A stretch of DNA of 63,983 nt, filler included, from Hyphochytrium catenoides (taxonomy: Eukaryota; Protista; Hyphochytriomycota): assembly GCA_900088475.1 (NCBI GenBank). It is 6 parts of 6 records of this genome, joined end to end, with 100 filler letters (N's around TTAATTAATTAA, not from the genome) between each part and the next. Parts side by side here need not be neighbours in the genome. Positions count along the whole stretch, not along the records: positions 28,936 to 39,814 come from FLMG01001363.1; 5 more parts are not named here. One strand, 5' to 3'. Positions within the stretch are counted from its first letter, which is position 1, and every line of letters begins with the position of its first letter. A program made the translations under genes and the position numbers. This document shows, in pieces, positions 2,848-39,814 of the stretch. Under the pieces are notes generated by a model. That model was not told the DNA's origin, ran no database searches, and was given only the letters and a program-made list of their open reading frames with translations.

Positions 2848-3257
2848 TTTTGTAATTTGGGAGGGAGGTATTTGGGTACCCTAGATATGTCTGGATAACA
2901 CGGTTGTTATATACTTTGTACGCCCTCAAAGACCTATATTATCAATAGGGGAAATATGGCTGAAAGGAACGTTACAAGTTTTGGAGGGAAAACGGACTCA
3001 AAAGAATCAACCGTCACCAGAACTGAATATCAGTAACAATGATAATCATAGACTGTTGAAAACTAGACCTAAACCAGATAACTTTTATATCAGTAATCGT
3101 TGTTGTCCTGACTGTCTCTCTGTCTCTCTGTGACCCTTCATAACCAAGACAAGGGCTTAGCTGGTCCTTTCTCTTCCCAAAGACGGAGCCAACAACAGAG
3201 AGAGAGAGAGAGACAGGGATACAGAGAGAGAGAGAGAGAAAGAGGAAGGGAAACACG

Positions 3258-3313
<56 letters not shown>

Positions 3314-3851
3314 GGGAGAGACAGAGAGAGAAAGGGAGTGAAGTTGGACAGACAGATGACGGCGACGGCGAAAGCCCGATGACGAACAACTTTAGAAGGC
3401 AGAAAGTCGACGGAAGGGCAAGGGAGAGGAAAGGAAAGGACAATGCGTGCCCCGCCCCGGCTTTGATATTTATGGACAGCTCTTCTCTTCCACATCCGAC
3501 TCCCTCACGTGCCCCTTCTAGACGCAATCTAGACCAGGAGGAGAGAGAGGGAGACAGATAGAGAGGAGAACGAGAGAGGAGAGATAGAAAGAAAGAGCGA
3601 GAGCGAGAGCGAGAGAGAGAGAGAGAGAGAGAGACAGACTGAGCGGAGAGAGAGAGAGAAAAAGAGCTATGTCGAACGGTCAGAGTAACGAAGGAAAGGA
3701 CAGCGGATGAAGGAGAACCTTCAGAATGGAAACCTCACGGGAACCGCGGTGAAGAATAGGAAAAGACTGAGACAAGCGGAAGAGAGAGACGACAAGTCTC
3801 AAATCGCTAGCGTCGGGACAGAAGAGAAGGAAAGCAGGTCGTCTCGCAAAG

Positions 3852-4560
3852 ATGACATGGGAAAGTGCTTCTCTCCTTGTTTTCCCTCTCGTCCTAGGGA
3901 CTCTGTTGCTCTCTCTCTTGCTCCTCTTTCTTCTCCGCCGGTCATCGCCCTTCCATCTGCGAGACAGAGTAGTGTTAATCACTGGCGCAGGGTCGGGAAT
4001 AGGTAGAGAGCTGGCTCTTCAGTTGGCCAACAGAGGAGCAGTGCTGGTGCTGCTGGACCTGAGAGAGGAGCTATTGGAGAAGGTGGCCAAAGAGATCGAG
4101 AAAGAGAGAGGAGAGAGAAAGGGAGTCCATACATTTGTATGCGACGTCTCGAATGCGAGGTGAGTGAACGATACATAAGGCGAACTTCATTGACGTCTTC
4201 TCTCTTTTCCCTCCTGTTTCTACCTTTCTCTGTCTCTCTAACTCTGGCTTTCTGTGTCCCTCCGCTCTCGTTTCCTCTCTTCTCTTTCTTTCTCTCTTCT
4301 CTCTTTCTTTCTCTCTTTCCTCTTCCTGTGTGCGTGTCGCTCTCTCTTGCTCTCTCTCTCTCTCTCTCTCTCTCTCGCTCCCTCTTAACTTTCTAGACAT
4401 ATTCCTCACCTTCCGACCTGTTCTCTCTTATCTGACACCTTCCGTCTCTTCACTGTGCCGTTAGCTCCGTGAGGGAGGTTGGGGAAGAAGTGAAAAAGGC
4501 AATTTTGCCTGCTAAAGTCTCTGTGATCGTTAACAACGCCGGTAGGGTCCTCCTGCTGAT

Positions 4561-28935: not shown

Positions 28936-31658
28936 ATAAGTTCATCTTTAACAAGGGAGAGAGAGGGGGAGAGCGAGTGGTACCGGACAAGAAAATGTTT
29001 CTTCAATATCGTTATCAGATGGATAATAGCGCGGATTGCCAGTCCTTCCTTAAGGAATTTCTGCAGACCAAGATGGTCGACCTCTTCCTCGAAGAGTATC
29101 TCCGTGTGCTGAGGGCAAAGACGGAACCAACAGGTACCACCAAGATGGGGCACGCCTATCTTCTCCTCTCTCTTGGGTACATCTGCCAACTTTTTCTTCA
29201 CACTTCTTTTGCCGTCTCCTCCTCTCTCTGCGACCCCCAAAGTCCTTCTCTCTCTCTTTTTGTGTAATTCTCTCAGTATCTCTCTCTCTCTCTCTCTCTG
29301 TGTGTGTATCTCTCTCCGTCTCTCTGTATTTGTCTGTCTATATCTCTACTCTTCATTATAATCTCAGCTTTTTTTCTTCTTCCTCTCTCTCTCCCGTTAC
29401 TCGCCTTCTCTTGTTCCTTCTCGTTCTTTCTCTTGTTCCTTCTCTTTCGTTACTAGCTCACATGGTGTTGATCTCTCTTTCTCTCTTATCTCTTTTTTCC
29501 TATTTCTAAGCTGATACCGATTATCTGCCTCCTTAGGAACCTTTTTCAAAGTTGCTAGAACTGGACTGCCAGATGTCTCTGAGGCGACCGCCAAAAAGAC
29601 TATCAAGGATGTCTCTTCCTCCTCCTCGTCGTCTTTTTCTTTCTCCTCTTCTCTTCCTATTCCTCTATCGTTGGGGGAGAGCGGAGAGAGCATCCGAAGC
29701 GTCATCCTCGAGGCAACCTCGACGTCTTCCTTCAAGCGGCCAGTGTTCCAGATACTGGACGAGTTGGCCTTGGCAAGCTATGACGATCTGCATTATGAAA
29801 CTATTATGGAAGGTGACTTGCAGGATTTATTCTCCTGTCTCTCGAGTTTTCTCCCTCTTGCTCTCTTCTCTCCCTCTCCTCTCTTGTGTTTCTGTACGGT
29901 TCTCATTCTCCTCTTTTATCTTTCCCTTTCTCTAGTTCTTCATCTCTATCCGTCGGTCAGTCTATCTACCCTATCTATGGATGACATGCTGTCTTCCTTT
30001 CACTCTTGATCCTATGTAGTCTACAATGCTGTCCAATATCTTTCTTCTTCTCTCTCTCTCGCCTCTCTGTCTCACTCTCTCGTACTCTCTCCTTGATAGT
30101 TATTCCACTCTGCCAGGCGTCTTTCTCTCTTCTCCCCTCATATCCCTGACTCCTAGCCATCCGCCTGCCTTCTGGTTCCCTCTCATATGCTTTCGTATTT
30201 TCCGTCAATATGTGTTAGTCCTGGACAACCGCCTCTCAGACTGCAATGCTTGGAAATGGAAGCACGCCTACCGCGGTCTCTTGGTCTTAGAGTACCTCTC
30301 CTGCTATGGAAACCTCCGTTGTCTCCCTGACCTGTTGGACAGAGCGAAGAAACTGAGGGAACTGCATGGGTACAAGTCCGAGATTGCGGGGAGGGATAAT
30401 AGCAAACAAGGTAAGATGGGCAACACGACAGAGGATTCTGGTGCCTTTCGACAATCTCTTGTCTCTCCTTATCCTCTATTGCTCTCTCTCTCTTTCTCTC
30501 TCTGTCTGTCTCTCTGTCTGTCTCTCTCTCTCTTTCTCTTCTCTTTCTCTTGCTCTCTCACACTTCCTCTTCTTCCGTCTCTCTCTGTGTCGCTCTTTGG
30601 CACGCAAGTTGCTTTCTTGTTCTCGGTGTCTAAGTGCACATAGTGTCCTCTCTTCTCTCTCTGCTTCTCTTCTTTTTCATTCCTTCTCACCTTGCCAATG
30701 CGTCTCTTTGATCGATATCTGGTGCTATTGTTGCGGAGGAGCCACAGCTCTTGAGCTTCTCTCTCCTTGCTCCCACCTTGTCTGTTAGTATTGCCTAACG
30801 TTTACCCATTCTCTTTGTTCTCTTCCTCTTTTCCATCTCTCTCTTTCGCTCTCTCCATTCCTCCCAACCGCTTTCCAGTGCGTCTGCAGGCTCACATATC
30901 CTACAATGTGCTCAATGACGTCAGGAAGCTACGGCTGGCGAGACAGAATATGCTTAAGGTTGGGAGAGAGAGGCATCCAGTGTTACATTTTGTCTCTGCT
31001 TCTCTCTTTTTTCTCTGATGTTCTCTTTCATTCGTGCTCTCTGTTCCGTCTCTTCTCTCATTTTCTCAGTCATCTCTTCCTTAACTCTCTTCCCCCCCTC
31101 TCTCTCTCTTCCTCTTCCTTTCTGTCTTTCTGCTTCTCCTCATATTTCCGCCCTATTTAGCTGGACGAAATCGCCTCTGGCCCTCGGGCGAAGGCTATCG
31201 AGCCAGAAAAGATCTTGGACTTCTCAAGGTTACACTCTCAGCTTGCTCCTCCTGGCTACACTGTGACGAAGAGACAAGAGGCTGACGAGAAAGGACAGAA
31301 GGGAAAGAAGAAGGACAAGAAGGCTATCTCAGCGTCTTCATCATCGTCTTCCCTCGCCTCTCAGGAGCCAGTAAAGCCTGCCACTCCTGTTACGTCGGAT
31401 CTTATTTCCTTCGATGCGATTGAGGAGACAACTGCAGGTCAAACACGGAGAGAGGAGAGCACATCATTCCACTTAACATTTTCTCTCTCTCTCACTCTCT
31501 CGCTCTGTTCGGTGTCTTGTCGGCGATACTTGCATAATGGGATCATGTTTTCTTTATCAGGATTCATGTGCCGTCCTCTCGCCTACCCTCTTCATCTTGC
31601 ATTCTCCCTCTCTCGTTCCTTACACGATCTATCACTACGTTCTTCTTACTTACCTTAC

Positions 31659-31700
<42 letters not shown>

Positions 31701-33193
31701 ACACACACACACACTCACACGAAAACACGCACTCTTTCCTCTCTCGCAGGCTCGACTACTCCGGTAGCAGGATCTACTGTGGGTACCGGGAGCGTTGGAA
31801 GCCGATCGTTTGACTTTGATCTGGGTACATCAAAGAGCAGCGGTGAGCTTAATCGCGCGTCTACTACTTTTCTGTCGTTTGATGTCTGCTCTCCACTATC
31901 TTCTGACCCTCCCTCTCTTCTTGGCCTCTTTCTTTCACTCTTCTTTCCTCTAGCAACGTGTGGATCTCTTCTCCTCCTCCCTATGTTCCTACGGTTCTTT
32001 CCGAGGTCTCTGTACTGACTTAGTAGCAAGGACTCTCTCTCTCTCTCTCTCTTTGATTTCCATTTATTAAGGTGTTCCCTCTTTCTGTCTCTTTGCATCT
32101 ACAGCGCTGTCAGACTTCAGTGCATCTTCAAATGGCTTCCAAGTGAACTGGAACACCCCTGCACAGGCCTCATCTGTCTCTTTAGGACAACCTGTAAGTC
32201 ATTAGCCTTTAAGTCATTAGCCTTCCATCCTCCGTCTCTTTTCCTTTTTCTCCCTGCTATTTCCTTCTTAGTTGTCTAGCCCATTATCCTCCTCTCTTTA
32301 TTTGGAGCGAAAATTTGCTTGTTCTTGAAGATCTGGTATGGACTGGCAAGCCTTTTTATGTCTCTCTCTTTTTCTCTCTCTTTCCCTGGCATCGACATCG
32401 TCTCTTGGCTCAACAGGACTCTCTTCTTTTCTCTTCCTAGTCACAGAATAGTCTTCAGTCCTTCGACATGTTCTTTGGACCTGAATCTCCGTCGAGACGC
32501 GGCAGCGTGCTTTCTGTTTCTTCTCCGCCGCTTCCCGTTTCTCCCTCTTCCCTCTCCACTGCCCCGAGCGCTAACAGTACTGGACTGGGAAGAGAGGAGA
32601 TGATGAGAAAGCAAGCTCCAGGTCTCACTTCCACCAACCCCGTCTCTCCTCTCTCTCCCTCTGCTCTATCATTATCGCCAGCCGCACAATACGCTCTCCC
32701 TCCGACACGTTCTCTTTCCCGCATTTCCTCTTCCAACTCCGCTGTAGTGCCTGCAGCCCTGACCTCCCAAGGGTCTAGAGGTAAGTACCTCATGGGGAAA
32801 GAGGGGAGAAAGAATAAAGAGCAGAGAAAGAGAGAGAGAGAGATCGGAGAAGACAGGTTGATGTATCTTCAATTCTTGTCCACCCTCTCTCCCTATCTGC
32901 GTTCTTAACCTTGTCACCCCCTCTCTCTCTTCCTCTTCCTCCGCGCAGGAGGGAACTCCGCTGGCGGCTTTGACTTTGGAGATCTCTTCGCTTCTCTGGA
33001 TAACCCGACCAGTCCGCGGGTCCAGGGAGAAGGGCCGAAGCAGGCAGCAAACCCTCCTCTGCAGAAAAATACACAGAGTTACACCGCGGGGACTCCATCC
33101 GTTCCACTCTCTCCCTCTTCTCTCTCCTCCTTTGATCACCAGAGAGCGAAGCTCGACGAAAGACAGCCTGCTTCCACCCCGTTCGATTGGTAG
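28936..33193 (+). CDS. dDENN-like + ENTH domain protein with clathrin/adaptor-binding tail (5' truncated)
   Basis: Nine in-phase GT-AG exons from the contig start to TAG 33191-33193. Exon 1 has KKMFL...FLKEFLQTKMV.LFLEE (dDENN-like). ENTH motifs EATS, ELA.ASYD...IM.VL..RL, WKH.YR.L.VLEYL..G, VR.QA....LND...LR..R. Tail has DLISFD, FDFGDLF and PFDW*. Confidence 0.8.
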
Positions 33194-33470
33194 GAAACTG
33201 AGAGAGAAGACGAAACTCTCTTATCTCCTTCTCCTCCCAATGCCGGGGCGTCTTAGGGTGGAGAGCAAAAAGGGAGAAAGGAAGAAAGACCCAGAAGACG
33301 AAAACCTTTTCTCCGCTGTAGATAGGGAACAAAATATGGCTTAACTATTGACGGCACTTGTTCTGACACAGGAGAATAAATGAGTCCATTGATAGCACCT
33401 TATGCGGTGAAGAGGAAAGAGAGAGAACGTGAACAGAGACACACTAGAGAGAGAGAGCGAGAGCGCGCGC

Positions 33471-33522
<52 letters not shown>

Positions 33523-33596
33523 GGGATGGGAGAGAGAGAAAGAGAAGATAGGAGAGACCGAGGAACGAGAGCAAGGAAACGCTCTTCAGTCTCCTC

Positions 33597-36500
33597 CTAG
33601 ACCTTCTCTTTTCCTGCATCTGCCCTGTCTGGCCTAATCCTCATTCGCGCATACTCTGCAGCGCCTTCCTGAACACCTTCTCTTAACTTCTCAGCGATGT
33701 ACTCCCTTACAGAGCCTGAAGCGAGAGAGAAGGGAGAGAACGGAAACGAAGTAAGAAAACGAGGTAAAGAAAGGAAGCCGAAGCTGAAGTAAGAGAGGGA
33801 AACACGGTCGTTAGGTATACTCCCAAATCGTATGTCATTGGTCAAAGGTAGCACTAAGAAGAGAGAGCAGTAGAGTCGCTCTTTCTTCGTCGTACCCCGA
33901 GCTCACTCTTTCCATAGTCCTCTTACCCTATCCCTTGCAATCCTTCTCTCTCTTTCTCTCTTTACCTTCTTCTCCAGCGGCGCCATTTGACTTTCTCTTG
34001 ACATTGAGCAATCCTCTATCCTCGGCGTCCTCTAGCTGCTGTTGGAAGGAGTGGTACAGCTCCTCGCTTGCAAGAAGAGTGGGGATCTGTGCGGAAAGAT
34101 AGGGCGGGAGGTCAAGGATTTTTTGAACGGGAGGAACAAAATGGTAAAACCCGGCACCCATCCCTCTCACTCTTTCTTTCCCTCTTTCTCTTCTCTCGTA
34201 ACACCTTACAACCACACACGCCCTCAACCCTTCTCTCTTTCCTGCTCTCACCTTTCAATCAGCTCCTCTCCCTCGCCAGGCTAACTCTTTCATCACACCA
34301 CTTTTATTGCGCGTTCTTTCTTTCCTTTATCGCATCTTTGCTCTCTCCTTTCCCTGTTTCCCTTTTTACCTTCGCTGTGTAGGCACCATAGAGCGCCACT
34401 AGGCAGGCGTCTGATATGTCATAGTTATGTACAGAAAACTTGCCCCCACGAGCCATCTCCCAGTCAGACAGAAGTTTCTCTTCTCTCATTCCACCTGTCT
34501 TCCTCCCTCTTCGTTGTGGATTGTCCTCTCTCTCTTCTGAGTCTTGACCTCCTGCGTTGCCCTCAAGGACTTCTATCAGCGGCGGCTCTAGCTCTCTCTC
34601 CCTCAGCTGCCGGATGACCTCAAAGACTTCCTGCAAGATTGAAAGTTTGAGTGAGACTCTAGCTCTTTGGACGCCCACGTTTCTCTGCTCTTTCTTCCTT
34701 CAGTTTCATCTCTCTCTTCGTCCCTGAAAGTGAAGATTAAAATAGAAGACAACGGAGAAGAAGGATAGAGAGAGAAAACAAGCGAGCGAAGGATAGAGAC
34801 AGAGAGAGAGAGAGAGACAACAGATACATGGGAAAAGGTCTAAACCTGACATGTTTGATGAGCGCTCGTGTCTTCCCAGGAATCTGAAAGAACTTTCTGA
34901 TGGCGATAGGGTTACATTGGTTGGGTGCCTGCCTGAGAGAGAGAGGGAGAGATGAGACGAAGCAGAACCTTGCGAAACGAAAAGAGACAGAAAGTGGCGG
35001 AAGAGAGAAGAGAGAGAAGAGGGAATACAGAGAGAGAGAAAAGAGAGAAGAGAGAGAGAGAGAGAAGGGTAGAGAAAAGAGAGTGGGAGTCAGAGAGAGA
35101 ACAGGGAGAGAGAATAAAGATAAAGACGAGGAATAAAGAAAAGGGAGAACAAGAGAGAAAAAGAGGAGAGTTAGATACCTAAATATCTCATGGCATTGAA
35201 AGGTGACGATTCCGTTCAGTTGCGCCAAGAGAAAGAGAGTCTTGTTGCTAGTCCTTCCTTGTGCGAAGGACGGCATAAATGACTCCACTAGCGGCTACAG
35301 AAGGAGAGAAAAGAGAGAGAAATAAAGAAGAGAGAGAGGAAGAGGGGAGGATGAAACAGAAGGACAGAGAGAATGATGAGGAAAGAAGCAAGAGAAATGC
35401 AGGTGATTTATTACGTGCGAGAGATAGATAGGCAGTAGAGATACAGCAAATTCAGGGCCAGGAAAGTGCTTGGACCTGGAAGAGCTCAGAGAGAAGACAG
35501 AGACAAAAACGGAAAGCAGAGCCCATCGGAGACAAAGATGAGCGATCATATGGAGAAAGAGGAGAGAGACTCATCTCCCTTAACAGCGAAGACAAAGAAG
35601 AGAGACACAAACAATCACAGATGAGCACCATGAAATCGAGAAAGTAAGCCAGAGAAGAGTGAGGGAGAAGAGACAGAGGAAACGGTAGAGAGTAATCCCC
35701 TGAAGGAAGGGGAAGTGAGGAAAATAGGAAGGGAAGGGAAGGAGAGAAGGGAGAAAATGTGCACACACTTTTACGGTCTTTCCCTGTGTCTCTTCCCTAA
35801 TCTTTCTAAGCTGCCTCTGAATGGCGGAACCGACGGAGAGAAGATCGGATTGACGCCTGAGGTCCACGCGTCCAAGTCGTACCAAGGCGCCTGGAGATCG
35901 GGAGAGAAAGCGTCGGAAAGCGAAAGAAAGAGATATAAACTGAGAATGGCAAAGCCGAGTAAGAGGATAAGAGTGCGTATCGCAGCTCTTGGAGGGAGAA
36001 GCGAGAGAAGTGGTGGGAGTTTAACGTTTCAGTGACTGGCTAACCAAGAAGAGAGGAAAGAGAGGTATTTATGGCTGTGTGAGGAAGAGAAAGAAAGAGA
36101 GAGAGAAAGAGAGAGAGTGAGAGAGAGAGAGGAAGAGAGAGAGGGAGAGAGAAAGAGGGGGAGGGAGAGGGGAAGGAGAGAAAAGAGAGAGAAGACCGAA
36201 GGCCAGATAGCCGCCAACCTTCCGCATTCACGAGGGCAAAGCCGGTGCTCTTTGTGCTGATATCCAAGCCCAAGAAGAGGTCGAAGGGAGAAGGAGCCGC
36301 TTCTAGCAGCTGGTCCACGTCTTTCACTAAGAAATGCTCTCTCGTTTTCTTTTTTCTCCTTGGTTTCCCTTCCGAAGCTTTGCTATTCTCTTCTCTTTCT
36401 CCTTTGTTTCCTCTCTCTCCTTCTACATTCTCTCTCTTCTCTTCTTCTTCTTCTTGGACTGGTGCTGAGCAGGCATTATCTAAAGGGGCCGCTGGGTGAG

Positions 36501-36636
36501 AGGAGAAGAGAAAACGACAAAAGGCAACGCTCTCTCTCTCTCTCTTTGTTCCTGCCATCAACTTTCCTTGCCAGGTCAGTCGCCCTAGAGGCTGACCGCA
36601 GGTAAACCTAGCTGCTCTTCGCCGCCAAAGCATCAT
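33597..36636 (-). CDS. RuvC-like (RNase H fold) Holliday junction resolvase, possibly mitochondrion-targeted
   Basis: Exons 36636-36219, 35890-35769, 35295-35179, 34932-34851, 34630-34370, 34086-33966, 33715-33597. Motifs FLGLDISTKSTGFA, VESF...F..G....L..LAQLNGIV, NP..IRK, YDISDA. Arg-rich, acid-free N-terminus. Confidence 0.8.
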
Positions 36637-39600
36637 CTTCCTTCTTCCCTCTCCCCGGTCTCCTCCTCCTCGCCTCCTGCCGTCTAGTCTTTCGTCATCT
36701 CCTGCTGCTTCCTTGGTTGTTCCTTTAATAAGTGGGAAGGGGTGACGAGCACGACGTGTGTGGTGCCGAGGAGGACGACGATGGAGGACAAAGCTGGAAG
36801 GAAGGAACGAGAACAAGAGATGCTAAAGAGAGAGAGAGAGCCGACGCGGGAGAGGGAAAGAGAAAGAGAGCGCGAGAGAGTGGAGAGAGGATAGCGGGGA
36901 CGAGAGAGAGAGAGCAGAAGAGAGAGAGAGAGAGAGAGCGGAAGAGAGAGAGAGAGAGAGACATTTTTCATAGTTTCCTGTTTTCTGTCAGAAGCAGGGT
37001 AACATGGGTACCCATTTGGGACCACTTGTTGCGTTGATAGAATGTAAGCTGAGAGGAATTTGTGTGGGTAGCTAACCAGGGTATGTTCATGATGTCCTCT
37101 TCTTCCCTCTCTTGTTGTTGTTGTCTTCCTGTTTCTCTCTCCTCTCCCTATCATTTTGTTAGTAGCAGAAGAAGGAAAAAGAAGAAGAAGAACGTGACGG
37201 AGCTTGCATCGGGGCAGCTAGCAGCAGGAGGAAGAGTTACGTGGAAGAAGAGGAGGACGGTGATGACACTACTACTACCAACAAGAAGGAAGAGAAAAAG
37301 AAGCCACGCCACAAACAGCTCCCGCTGCTGCTGCTGGTTGTCGGCGAGGATGATGATTGCCTGACCGAAGCCCCAGGCAACAGAAGGGAGTGATAAGTTG
37401 CTGATCATCAAGTTGATGTCTTTCTGCTGGTGGTGGAGAGCATCATCCTACCGGCTGCTGTTATTATCGACCATCATCACCTGCAGCAGCAGCAGTAGTT
37501 CTTCCTCCTCCTCCCATATCATAAACACCTCTTGCTATTGTTTATCAATGCCCAGCGAGTCCTCACGAGCGGTGGAGCAGTACTGTTAGAGTGCTCTTTG
37601 GGCACAATGAAGTGTACTGTCACAGTCCCTCGCCGCCCGGGTCTGTTGATGGTGAGGAACGCTGCTGCTGTGAGAAAATCTGTAGTAGAAAAGTTTACCA
37701 AAAAGGGAAAAAATTTACCGCCCATTGGTGTGTACTACTGAATAGCCTAGGATAGTTTACCTCAAGATGACAATGATCATCTGCCCAACCGGCCTAAAGT
37801 GTGGCGATGGTCCCTTTGGGCCCTCGGTCCCAGTGTATTATCTTAGCGCTAGCCTGACCTGACAGTACATTAATTCTACAGGGCCCACCTCGCATGGTCG
37901 GTCGGTCTTCATCGTGGTCCCCAACAAATGATGATGATCAGGACCGTTGGAGGCACTACTAGTTATAGAAATTTTGGTGAGCCTCTTCTAATTGTACTAT
38001 TGTTATCTCTTCTTGCTCCATACATCATGATCATCGTCACTATCATGCATCCTGGTCCTCCATCATCCCGTGCCTGTCCGACCCTGCTGTCTCCGACCTT
38101 GAGATCCGCCAACTCGATCTATTGAATAAATATATCGTCCACTTCTTTCAACTTCTTGCTTTTCTTCTTCATCTTCTTCTCCTGCTGCTTGTTCTATTAT
38201 GGACACCTTGCTATCAACCCTTGTTTGTGTTGGTCAGCAGCAGTAAATCTAAACATATTAGTCTCATTACTGTCCATTACTTAGATTATGGCTGAGGAGC
38301 AGAGCAGAAGAGTCACTCTGACCGTTGTTGCCTGACAAGGAAAACGATTGGTTATGCTGGAGGAGGAGGAGGTAGAAGAAGTGACGTCCTTACCTCCCGC
38401 TCCGTCCTCCACGTTGCTCACCCATCATACAATTACTTAAAGTACTATTATCGCGCGGCGGTTTGGTCACCGATGAATTGGAGAAATCCATCTGCATCGT
38501 TCGATGAATTGAAGAAATCCATCTGCTGCATCGTCTTCATTCTTTAAAAATTGTGCACTGATCCTCCTGCCGACCACCTCAGGAAGAAGAAGGCAGAAGA
38601 ACAGCAGAATGAAGAAAGAAGGTGGCCACTTACTACTTCTCTCCCAGCAGGAGGAGATCTCCTTAAGCTACTACTACTTTCTTGTTGTTGGTGGTGATGA
38701 CTAACTGACAACGAATGGTTATTACAGTCCGTTCATGTTAAGGAAAAAGCAGCAGACGGCAGCGGCACTTCTTGTTGCCTCCTGCGCTTGGTGGCGGATG
38801 ATCGACATAGTTAAGAAGAAAGCCCCAAGAAGAAGTTGGTTTAGAAAGGTGCTAGTACTCATCGTTATAATGACTACTGCTGCTGTGTGGTGTGAAGAGT
38901 AATACAAGCTCTTACTTGGCCATCGCAGCATCATCACCAGCGGCACTACTAGTACTTGTCTTAGTAGCAGTAGGCTCTCCTAGTTAGTGCACAGTGAGAC
39001 CTCACAAGCGGTGCTCTTACAGGAGGAGGATCTGCTCTGCTGGGGCCTGGGGCAGGCATAACTAAGAAGTAAGTACTGTTACAGTCCCTCGAACGCCGAA
39101 CCCCTTTCTACTAACAATTTCTGAGCTTGACCCCTTTCTAAATATTTCTATGGGAGTTTGGATAGACATGATGATTATCTGCAACAAATCGTAACTCGAA
39201 AGGGGTCCATAATCATAATTACTGTTGGAATGTATGAGCTTACCAGAAACACGTTCAACTGAAAAGGGCAAAACGTCGTCGTCATAGGGATGAAAGGGCG
39301 GTTAATCAATGTGGCCCTTTATTAATAACCAGACATTAGTAAGGAGTGCATAATCGACTACTGTTTGAAGAAGATAAAGAGATGCAAAAAATATGTACTA
39401 CGAAGCAACAAAAAAAGAGAATGGAGAAAGATAGAGCTAAAATAGGCCAAAGAGAAGAGAAGAGCAGAGAAGCTAGGACCTCACCTGGCCCCCACCACGC
39501 GCCGGGCATCATTGACCGCCGAAGGACGCACCACCGAGGAGGCGGCGGGAAGTTCAGATCGTCCTCCTCCGTACGTCCCCAATAATAATGCGATAGAGGA

Positions 39601-39814
39601 AGAAGTCTTGATCCTGCTCACCCACGGCTAGCAGCAGCCAAGAGGGCGTTTTTTCAGTTATAGTGTATGTCCATACAAACTTCCATACACATTTTTTTTG
39701 ACTCGCAATGGGGTCAAGCTGAAAAGACGTTCCTAGTTAGAAAGCAGGGGTGGGCAATTAGGGGCACTCTCTCAGCATTGGCCATAGGTTAAATTATCAC
39801 CTCCATAACTTTCT

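Follow-up and report, generated by a model that had tools for sequence, protein, structure and literature searches.

The DNA analyzed in this study, referred to here as the window, is a stretch of 63,983 nucleotides from Hyphochytrium catenoides. On its minus strand, between positions 36636 and 33597, seven open reading frame (ORF) segments with GT and AG at their boundaries join into one in-frame ORF of 410 codons. An original prediction, made from the sequence of this stretch, had described seven in-frame exons of a RuvC-type Holliday junction resolvase at this locus, and our reading of the ORFs and GT-AG signals recovered all of them, with the peptides that had been quoted for them in their places. 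The gene very probably encodes an intact nuclease of the RuvC superfamily with an affinity to a family of tailed-phage proteins (PHROG 159), as judged by sequence comparison.

The phage family was reached by a scan of IMG/VR with an alignment of motif I, which returned one viral contig, L005 (IMGVR_UViG_3300033073_001881), an 87-kb uncultivated virus genome (UViG). The ORF at positions 2902-3525 of this contig is collinear with the predicted protein, and the two share 31% identity over 102 residues (56.6 bits) in an alignment that spans the exon 1/2 and exon 2/3 junctions. Among the PHROG families, the L005 ORF in turn has its stronger match (2e-15) in phrog_159, whose annotation reads 'RuvC-like Holliday junction resolvase', and a second one (1e-6) in phrog_827; the RuvC protein of phage bIL67 belongs to phrog_827, which itself corresponds to PF07066 (3e-94). 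Exons 1 and 5 of the window gene match phrog_159 weakly and in the same order, with E values of 0.03-0.24 for single exons against the PHROG model. Exon 1 alone also gives a weak match to phrog_827 (E 0.2), and a relative of the gene on another contig, L003, gives an E value of 0.0027. In the protein collection, the L005 ORF has 33 relatives (P0006-P0038), all of which are unnamed and without Pfam domains.

The spliced product was assembled from the window sequence and scored locally against profiles of the phage family. A 34-member profile gave 79.5 bits (E 1e-26, for one target) and aligned without gaps through residues 120-255 and hence across four exon junctions, and a 101-member profile gave 87.3 bits (E 5e-29, again for one target), also ungapped across the four junctions. 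When an insert of 34 residues (residues 269-302) was deleted, the product was joined to the profile by one alignment over positions 3-181 of 186 with a score of 98.4 bits, a gain that is slightly optimised because the insert boundaries were picked from 81 trials. The C-terminal segment NYDISDACLVALYGA aligns to cvDaaDafllakagl of the family, a match that is weak when taken alone. In blastp comparisons with single phage proteins, scores of up to 80 bits were obtained, with 31-37% identity over 111-150 residues, and the predicted protein is approximately equidistant from all the phage members sampled (26-37% identity). The similarity is far more than chance would produce, and the searches support tailed-phage proteins as its only significant sequence relatives.

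Direct searches were uninformative, since five short exons share the domain between them. No match was returned by word-indexed protein searches with the exon 1 and exon 5 regions or by tblastn of the exon 3-4 ORF against GenBank phages, and no locus was found in a scan of JGI metagenomes with an exon 3 alignment or in a scan of prokaryote genomes with motif I. Looked up exactly, the window ORF had no entry in public assemblies.

The predicted protein and the PHROG 159 family share the order of their elements, the invariant residues D, E, D, D, K and N, and the motifs LGLDISTsxTG, vE..., LAkFNg and D..DA. In the window, LGLDIST occupies residues 122-128 within exon 1, where motif I aligns to phage profile positions 3-25. 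Its aspartate, D125, is the first catalytic Asp and corresponds to the family-invariant D10 at the end of beta-1; its codon (36264-36262, minus strand, as for all codons given here) is exactly where the catalytic Asp had been predicted to lie. The Glu expected about 60 residues later is E182 of PLVESF (35285-35283), 57 residues after D125. Further along are LAQLNGIV (residues 201-208), NPIAIRK (224-230) and YDISDA (314-319), the last of which supplies D315 (34420-34418) and D318 (34411-34409). D125, E182, D315 and D318 fill the four invariant acidic positions of the phage family (D10, E64, D163 and D166), which are equivalent to D7, E66, D138 and D141 of E. coli RuvC. The Asn of LAQLNG, N205, aligns to the invariant N87, and the Lys of ALIKH aligns to the invariant K125. 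Membership of the RuvC superfamily with the full D-E-D-D tetrad in place, as originally proposed, is supported.

The window gene also differs from the PHROG 159 genes, which are approximately 180 codons long and are placed in replication/recombination modules. Unlike these genes, it has spliceosomal introns, an N-terminal extension of 117 residues and the insert within the core, and its product may end in a C-terminal tail of 80 residues. The positions of these features are given in Table 1.

Table 1. Features of the RuvC-type gene and its 5' leader, in window coordinates.
Feature	Position	Strand	Residues	Content and basis
Exon 1	36219..36636	-	1-139	ATG at 36636; N-terminal extension and beta-1 with LGLDISTKSTGFA
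N-terminal extension	36286..36636	-	1-117	phage homologues start a few residues before motif I
Exon 2	35775..35890	-	140-178	beta-2, beta-3 and first helix; both junctions ungapped in the profile alignment
Exon 3	35179..35294	-	179-216	PLVESF with catalytic E182, and helix LAQLNGIV
Exon 4	34851..34932	-	217-244	NPIAIRK and invariant Lys of ALIKH
Exon 5	34370..34630	-	245-331	helix, low-complexity insert, then NYDISDACLVALYGA with D315 and D318
Insert	34457..34558	-	269-302	34 residues, charged, low-complexity, inside the RuvC core; phage homologues without insert
Proposed exon 6	33966..34086	-	332-371	ORF and GT-AG signals only
Proposed exon 7	33597..33715	-	372-410	stop at 33597-33599; ORF and GT-AG signals only
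Upstream ORF	36684..36698	-		4 codons, ATG ACG AAA GAC TAG; in presumed 5' leader, ~50 nt before the start, out of frame

The structure of exons 1-5 is validated by the phage profile, because the alignment runs without gaps across their junctions. A microexon that had been suspected between exons 2 and 3 is not required; the alignment is continuous across this junction, and the predicted protein already exceeds the phage protein by 3 residues there. The start codon was taken as the first in-frame ATG of the ORF, and there may be a further exon upstream of it. At the other end of the gene, exons 6 and 7 are predicted, and an alternative product of five exons and 352 residues, with its stop codon at 34304-34306, is equally possible. 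The proposed intron 5 has a purine fraction of 0.69 on the coding strand, compared to 0.12-0.24 in introns 1-3. The catalytic core is the same in the seven-exon and the five-exon versions.

A model of a phage member was built with AlphaFold2 on the 34-sequence alignment, and it reached a predicted local distance difference test (pLDDT) score of 90.7 and a predicted template modeling (pTM) score of 0.87, compared to a pLDDT of 36.7 for the phage ORF in single-sequence AlphaFold. The RuvC fold has a five-stranded mixed sheet, and the model places the catalytic residues on exactly the elements that carry them in that fold: D10 where beta-1 ends, E64 where beta-4 ends, and D163 and D166 where the last helix begins. 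The best Foldseek matches of the model were bacterial RuvC (E 9e-8). The VIA-align Z scores, which were measured on the model of the phage relative and not on the predicted protein of the window, were 18-19 for bacterial RuvC (root-mean-square deviation 2.2-2.4 for approximately 147 of 154 residues), 17.2 for bIL67 RuvC (4KTW), 16-17.2 for MOC1, 14-15 for the pox resolvases, 13-14.6 for TEFM, 12.7 for Ydc2 and approximately 11 for YqgF/RuvX. The window protein itself would adopt the RuvC fold, given its 31-37% identity to the phage members.

At the level of sequence, the phage family is far from every protein of solved structure. The family profile searched against PDB sequences matched only the RuvC-I motif of Cas9 (E 0.004) and Deinococcus radiodurans RuvC (E 0.56), and chains of MOC1, Ydc2 and A22 were absent from its matches at E values of up to 10. 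PF02075, the bacterial RuvC family, was reached by 3 of the 34 family members with a best E value of 0.0018, short of the cut-off, and no window exon scanned singly matched it. Bacterial RuvC (PDB 1HJR, 7XHJ, 4LD0) is the best structural match of the phage relative with marginal sequence similarity, and RuvAB partners are not implied for the window protein. The RuvC protein of Lactococcus phage bIL67 (PF07066/DUF3882; PDB 4KTW) is a biochemically characterised phage resolvase (PMC3864405). It has the RuvC fold and the tetrad layout in common with the phage relative of the window protein but no significant similarity was seen in direct comparison: the window protein gave an E value of 1.4 in blastp, and an hhalign comparison of the phage family with the single bIL67 sequence was not significant.

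The remaining RuvC-fold proteins compared are encoded by eukaryotes or by their viruses. MOC1 (PDB 6KVO, 6IS9), the chloroplast resolvase of green plants and algae, is like the window gene in being nuclear-encoded and in having an N-terminal extension, which in MOC1 is for targeting; it has no sequence-level match, so the window protein is not a MOC1 orthologue. The fungal mitochondrial Cce1/Ydc2 (PF09159; PDB 1KCF) and TEFM are likewise nuclear-encoded, organellar and RuvC-like in fold, and show no match in sequence. The catalytic residues are missing from TEFM, whereas the window protein keeps all four. Poxvirus A22 and its relatives (PF04848; PDB 6P7B, 5E6F) are virus-encoded RuvC-fold resolvases, again without a sequence match, and belong to another viral realm with other hosts. 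An orthologue of Ydc2, MOC1 or A22 was therefore rejected, as the exons have no Pfam match and the likeness through the phage relative is at the level of the fold (Z 12.7-17.2), in agreement with the separate standing that the original prediction had given the gene.

At least 194 IMG/VR viral contigs encode the phage family, and its language-model look-alikes are all from Uroviricota. Among prokaryotes, represented by one genome each of 185,579 species, there were 2 loci only, both on contigs of metagenome-assembled genomes (MAGs). One of these contigs, L013 (PBOB01000007.1, from an 'Acidiferrobacteraceae' MAG), and the viral contig L087 (IMGVR_UViG_2802429371_000007) are each 24,260 bp long and have identical match coordinates. 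L013 is, on these grounds, evidently phage DNA that ended up in the bin of a bacterial MAG. The gene had been proposed to be possibly phage- or bacteria-derived, and the only significant relatives of the protein are from phages.

In the phage genomes, the RuvC-like gene is found in the company of replication genes. On L005 it adjoins a gene for a DnaG-type primase with a CHC2 zinc finger and a Toprim domain (region 2902-4502). The contigs L007 and L008 carry genes for a terminase, a T4-type portal and a prohead protease, together with a primase-like and an SbcCD-like gene. In these phages (L007 3227-7886 and the L005 region above), the RuvC-like gene is followed by a primase-like gene of approximately 318 residues, and on L007 and L008 the latter is followed by a gene for a 1048-residue SbcCD-like Metallophos/SMC_N protein. 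These phage genes make up a replication/recombination module that is conserved and lies immediately upstream of the terminase, portal and protease genes.

Relatives of the gene were also found in other eukaryote-like sequences. A search of 1.8 billion representative proteins with an exon 3+4 alignment, in a profile that kept the intron columns as positions, returned P0001 and P0002 only, which are ORF fragments on unannotated contigs; exon 3 is 54% identical to them. The contigs of the relatives come from Logan (SRR23272335, SRR23272295, ERR9287622) and from ENA (ERZ6863445, ERZ6864208). These five contigs (L002, L003, L004, L010 and L011) carry the motifs LYLGLDISTQSTGYAVL and VWVVGVEDFMRRFLPGRSNAKSIFALAQLNGIVKYACHK, split by non-coding stretches with GT-AG bounds. 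L003 and L004 are 95% identical to each other and L002 is approximately 81% identical to both, so that L002 and L003/L004 represent two further species-level eukaryotic lineages. Between L002 and L003, 7 nucleotides differ in 56 exon codons, all 7 of them synonymously, whereas the intron between these exons has diverged with many indels, so the gene is under purifying selection in those eukaryotes. This comparison covers the region up to the equivalent of exon 4, as the contigs stop before the exon with the D-x-x-D motif. All five contigs end approximately 300 nt past the exon 4 equivalent, and the shared end point suggests a repeat or an assembly-breaking sequence there.

In a quick, unrooted maximum-likelihood tree, the window sequence and the partial sequence from L004 group together with an SH-aLRT support of 97. 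The tree speaks for a single acquisition long ago, or for common ancestry and rapid divergence since then.

The N-terminal extension had been proposed to be a mitochondrial presequence. Its start, MMLWRRRAARFTCGQPLGRLTW, has 7 Arg or Lys and no Asp or Glu in residues 1-31, and acidic residues begin only at position 33; no family match to the extension was found in a Pfam scan. In the L004 relative, the presumed first exon starts with MLGVFR, followed by a 13-residue uncharged stretch and then by a basic region rich in Ser and Thr, and this N-terminus looks more like a signal peptide plus transit peptide.

Our best overall explanation of the locus, to which we assign a probability of about 0.6, is that it holds an intact, spliced nuclear gene for a phage-related RuvC-type endonuclease whose likeliest role is organellar. 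The gene would descend from, or share an ancestor with, the tailed-bacteriophage resolvase family, and it is probably a real, phage-derived RuvC resolvase gene with a product that is predicted to be active. We infer that the product is a nuclease and a dimer: residues 118-331 would form a core with the RuvC RNase H-like fold that dimerizes, and D125, E182, D315 and D318 would bind two divalent metal ions. Resolution of junctions is a likely activity, in which the enzyme would make paired nicks in four-way junctions or in other branched DNA, as bIL67 RuvC, bacterial RuvC, MOC1 and Cce1/Ydc2 do. The 117-residue extension would most likely direct the protein to a DNA-containing compartment, and in mitochondria or plastids its role would be to resolve recombination or replication intermediates. 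Cce1/Ydc2, MOC1 and TEFM are organellar RuvC-fold proteins, and an organellar role is the most likely single reading because the characterised eukaryotic RuvC-type resolvases are, to our knowledge, all organellar. By this analogy, we give organellar localization of the protein close to an even chance. A fuller scenario, in which a protist lineage made up of the organism of the window and two or more further eukaryotes, represented by metagenome and read-archive contigs, independently captured a tailed-phage RuvC gene, added introns and a targeting extension to it, and uses it for resolving and segregating its mitochondrial or plastid DNA, is put forward tentatively and with somewhat less confidence than the localization.

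Several observations weigh against this explanation. Pfam and PDB sequence searches with single window exons yielded nothing relevant, with chance matches only. The gene model is known from genomic sequence alone, and the proposed exons 6-7 (residues 332-410) have good splice signals and no homology support. Both eukaryotic sequences in the tree sit on very long branches of approximately 2.4 substitutions per site, and their grouping and their placement among the phage sequences are uncertain because of this length (long-branch attraction). With regard to the presequence, the Arg-rich, acid-free composition that had been noted holds, whereas an amphipathic helix is not apparent: in the first 40 residues, the best 18-residue helical hydrophobic moment is 0.25, a value that 98% of shuffles reach or exceed, although the shuffle test is a crude one for a presequence helix. 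These 40 residues contain no hydrophobic run longer than 5 residues. The basic start is followed by an acidic low-complexity stretch and then by KPRRKKKT (residues 91-98; 36343-36366), which resembles a classical nuclear localization signal (NLS). With no amphipathic moment at the N-terminus and an NLS-like motif after it, the case for organellar targeting of the protein is one of precedent and not of sequence.

The last of these observations would fit a different role for the same active RuvC-type nuclease, one in the nucleus, for example on chromosomal recombination or repair intermediates, with the extension as a disordered acidic and basic linker that carries a monopartite NLS. The lack of an amphipathic helix and of a long hydrophobic run at the start of the protein speaks for this reading. 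However, the basic residues 1-32 include no acidic residue, the N-terminus of the relative resembles a signal or transit peptide and not an NLS, and the characterised eukaryotic RuvC-fold proteins are organellar. We consider a nuclear role the less likely one, though a serious rival to the organellar role. A protein with the RuvC fold could also have passed beyond DNA cutting to another role, as TEFM did in mitochondrial transcription elongation. The phage relative does match TEFM in structure, and the core of the window protein has a eukaryote-specific insert and tails. TEFM is known for the loss of its catalytic residues, whereas the window protein keeps the acidic tetrad together with the invariant Lys and Asn, and the sequence similarity is to phage resolvases and not to TEFM; a loss of cutting activity is for these reasons very unlikely.

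We judge it still more improbable that the locus has no working host gene and is a decaying insertion of a virus or mobile element, or an over-read ORF model. Such a reading would draw on the genomic origin of the model, on the state of exons 6-7 and on the lack of an annotated protein match among the 1.8 billion representatives. It would have to account for five exons that splice in frame and are collinear with the 186-position profile with every invariant residue kept, for the spliceosomal introns and the adjoining host gene described below, and for homologues under purifying selection in other eukaryotes. A nuclease of the YqgF/RuvX type (PF03652), or another RNase H-fold nuclease that is not a resolvase and acts, for example, in RNA processing, has a comparably small chance of being correct. 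YqgF/RuvX chains do match the phage relative in structure, but at a Z score well below those of bacterial RuvC, MOC1 and bIL67 RuvC (18-19, 17 and 17), and there is no sequence match. Both the D-x-x-D motif, where the last helix begins, and the Glu, where beta-4 ends, are placed as in RuvC, and the PHROG matches are to resolvase families. YqgF/RuvX was therefore rejected, and the YqgF fold, which had been named as an outcome that would overturn the original prediction, is further from the model of the phage relative than RuvC is.

The gene is of a known kind, a RuvC-fold resolvase encoded in the eukaryotic nucleus, and what is new is this lineage, the phage affinity and the additions to the domain. 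Our full-text searches, in which reviews on the segregation of organelle genomes and on the RNase H-like superfamily were included, turned up no account of a phage-type RuvC resolvase gene from alveolates or other protists. Many protists replicate or maintain their organelle DNA by recombination. Apart from Cce1/Ydc2 in fungi and MOC1 in the green lineage, we know of no generally recognized resolvase for organellar recombination intermediates. An intact nuclear gene for a RuvC-type nuclease with phage ancestry is a concrete candidate to fill this gap. If the organellar role is correct, the gene would be a third separate origin of organellar Holliday junction resolvases, beside Cce1/Ydc2 and MOC1, and one more phage-derived component in the maintenance of organelle DNA. 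Phage-type enzymes have already been recruited to organelle DNA transactions, as with the T7-like RNA polymerase and Twinkle, and an organellar resolvase would extend this list. If a host of the gene is a parasite, an enzyme without an animal counterpart would also be of practical interest.

The gene next to the resolvase gene lies on the plus strand at 29400-33000 and has multiple exons with CT-rich introns. Residues 65-120 of its ORF at 30026-30643 match the ENTH domain (PF01417) at E 1.6e-6, as in an epsin- or tepsin-like trafficking protein. With this ENTH neighbor, the locus is ordinary host chromatin. A viral island was considered and rejected, since a host ENTH gene adjoins and the resolvase gene has introns. 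The 2.7 kb upstream of the resolvase gene (37100-39814) contains no convincing ORF or Rfam match and appears to be intergenic. Introns so rich in CT may be reminiscent of those in coccidian or other alveolate genomes. Across 33400-36900, the non-coding parts are filled by long CT/GA dinucleotide tracts, and the strand bias flips at approximately 34400.

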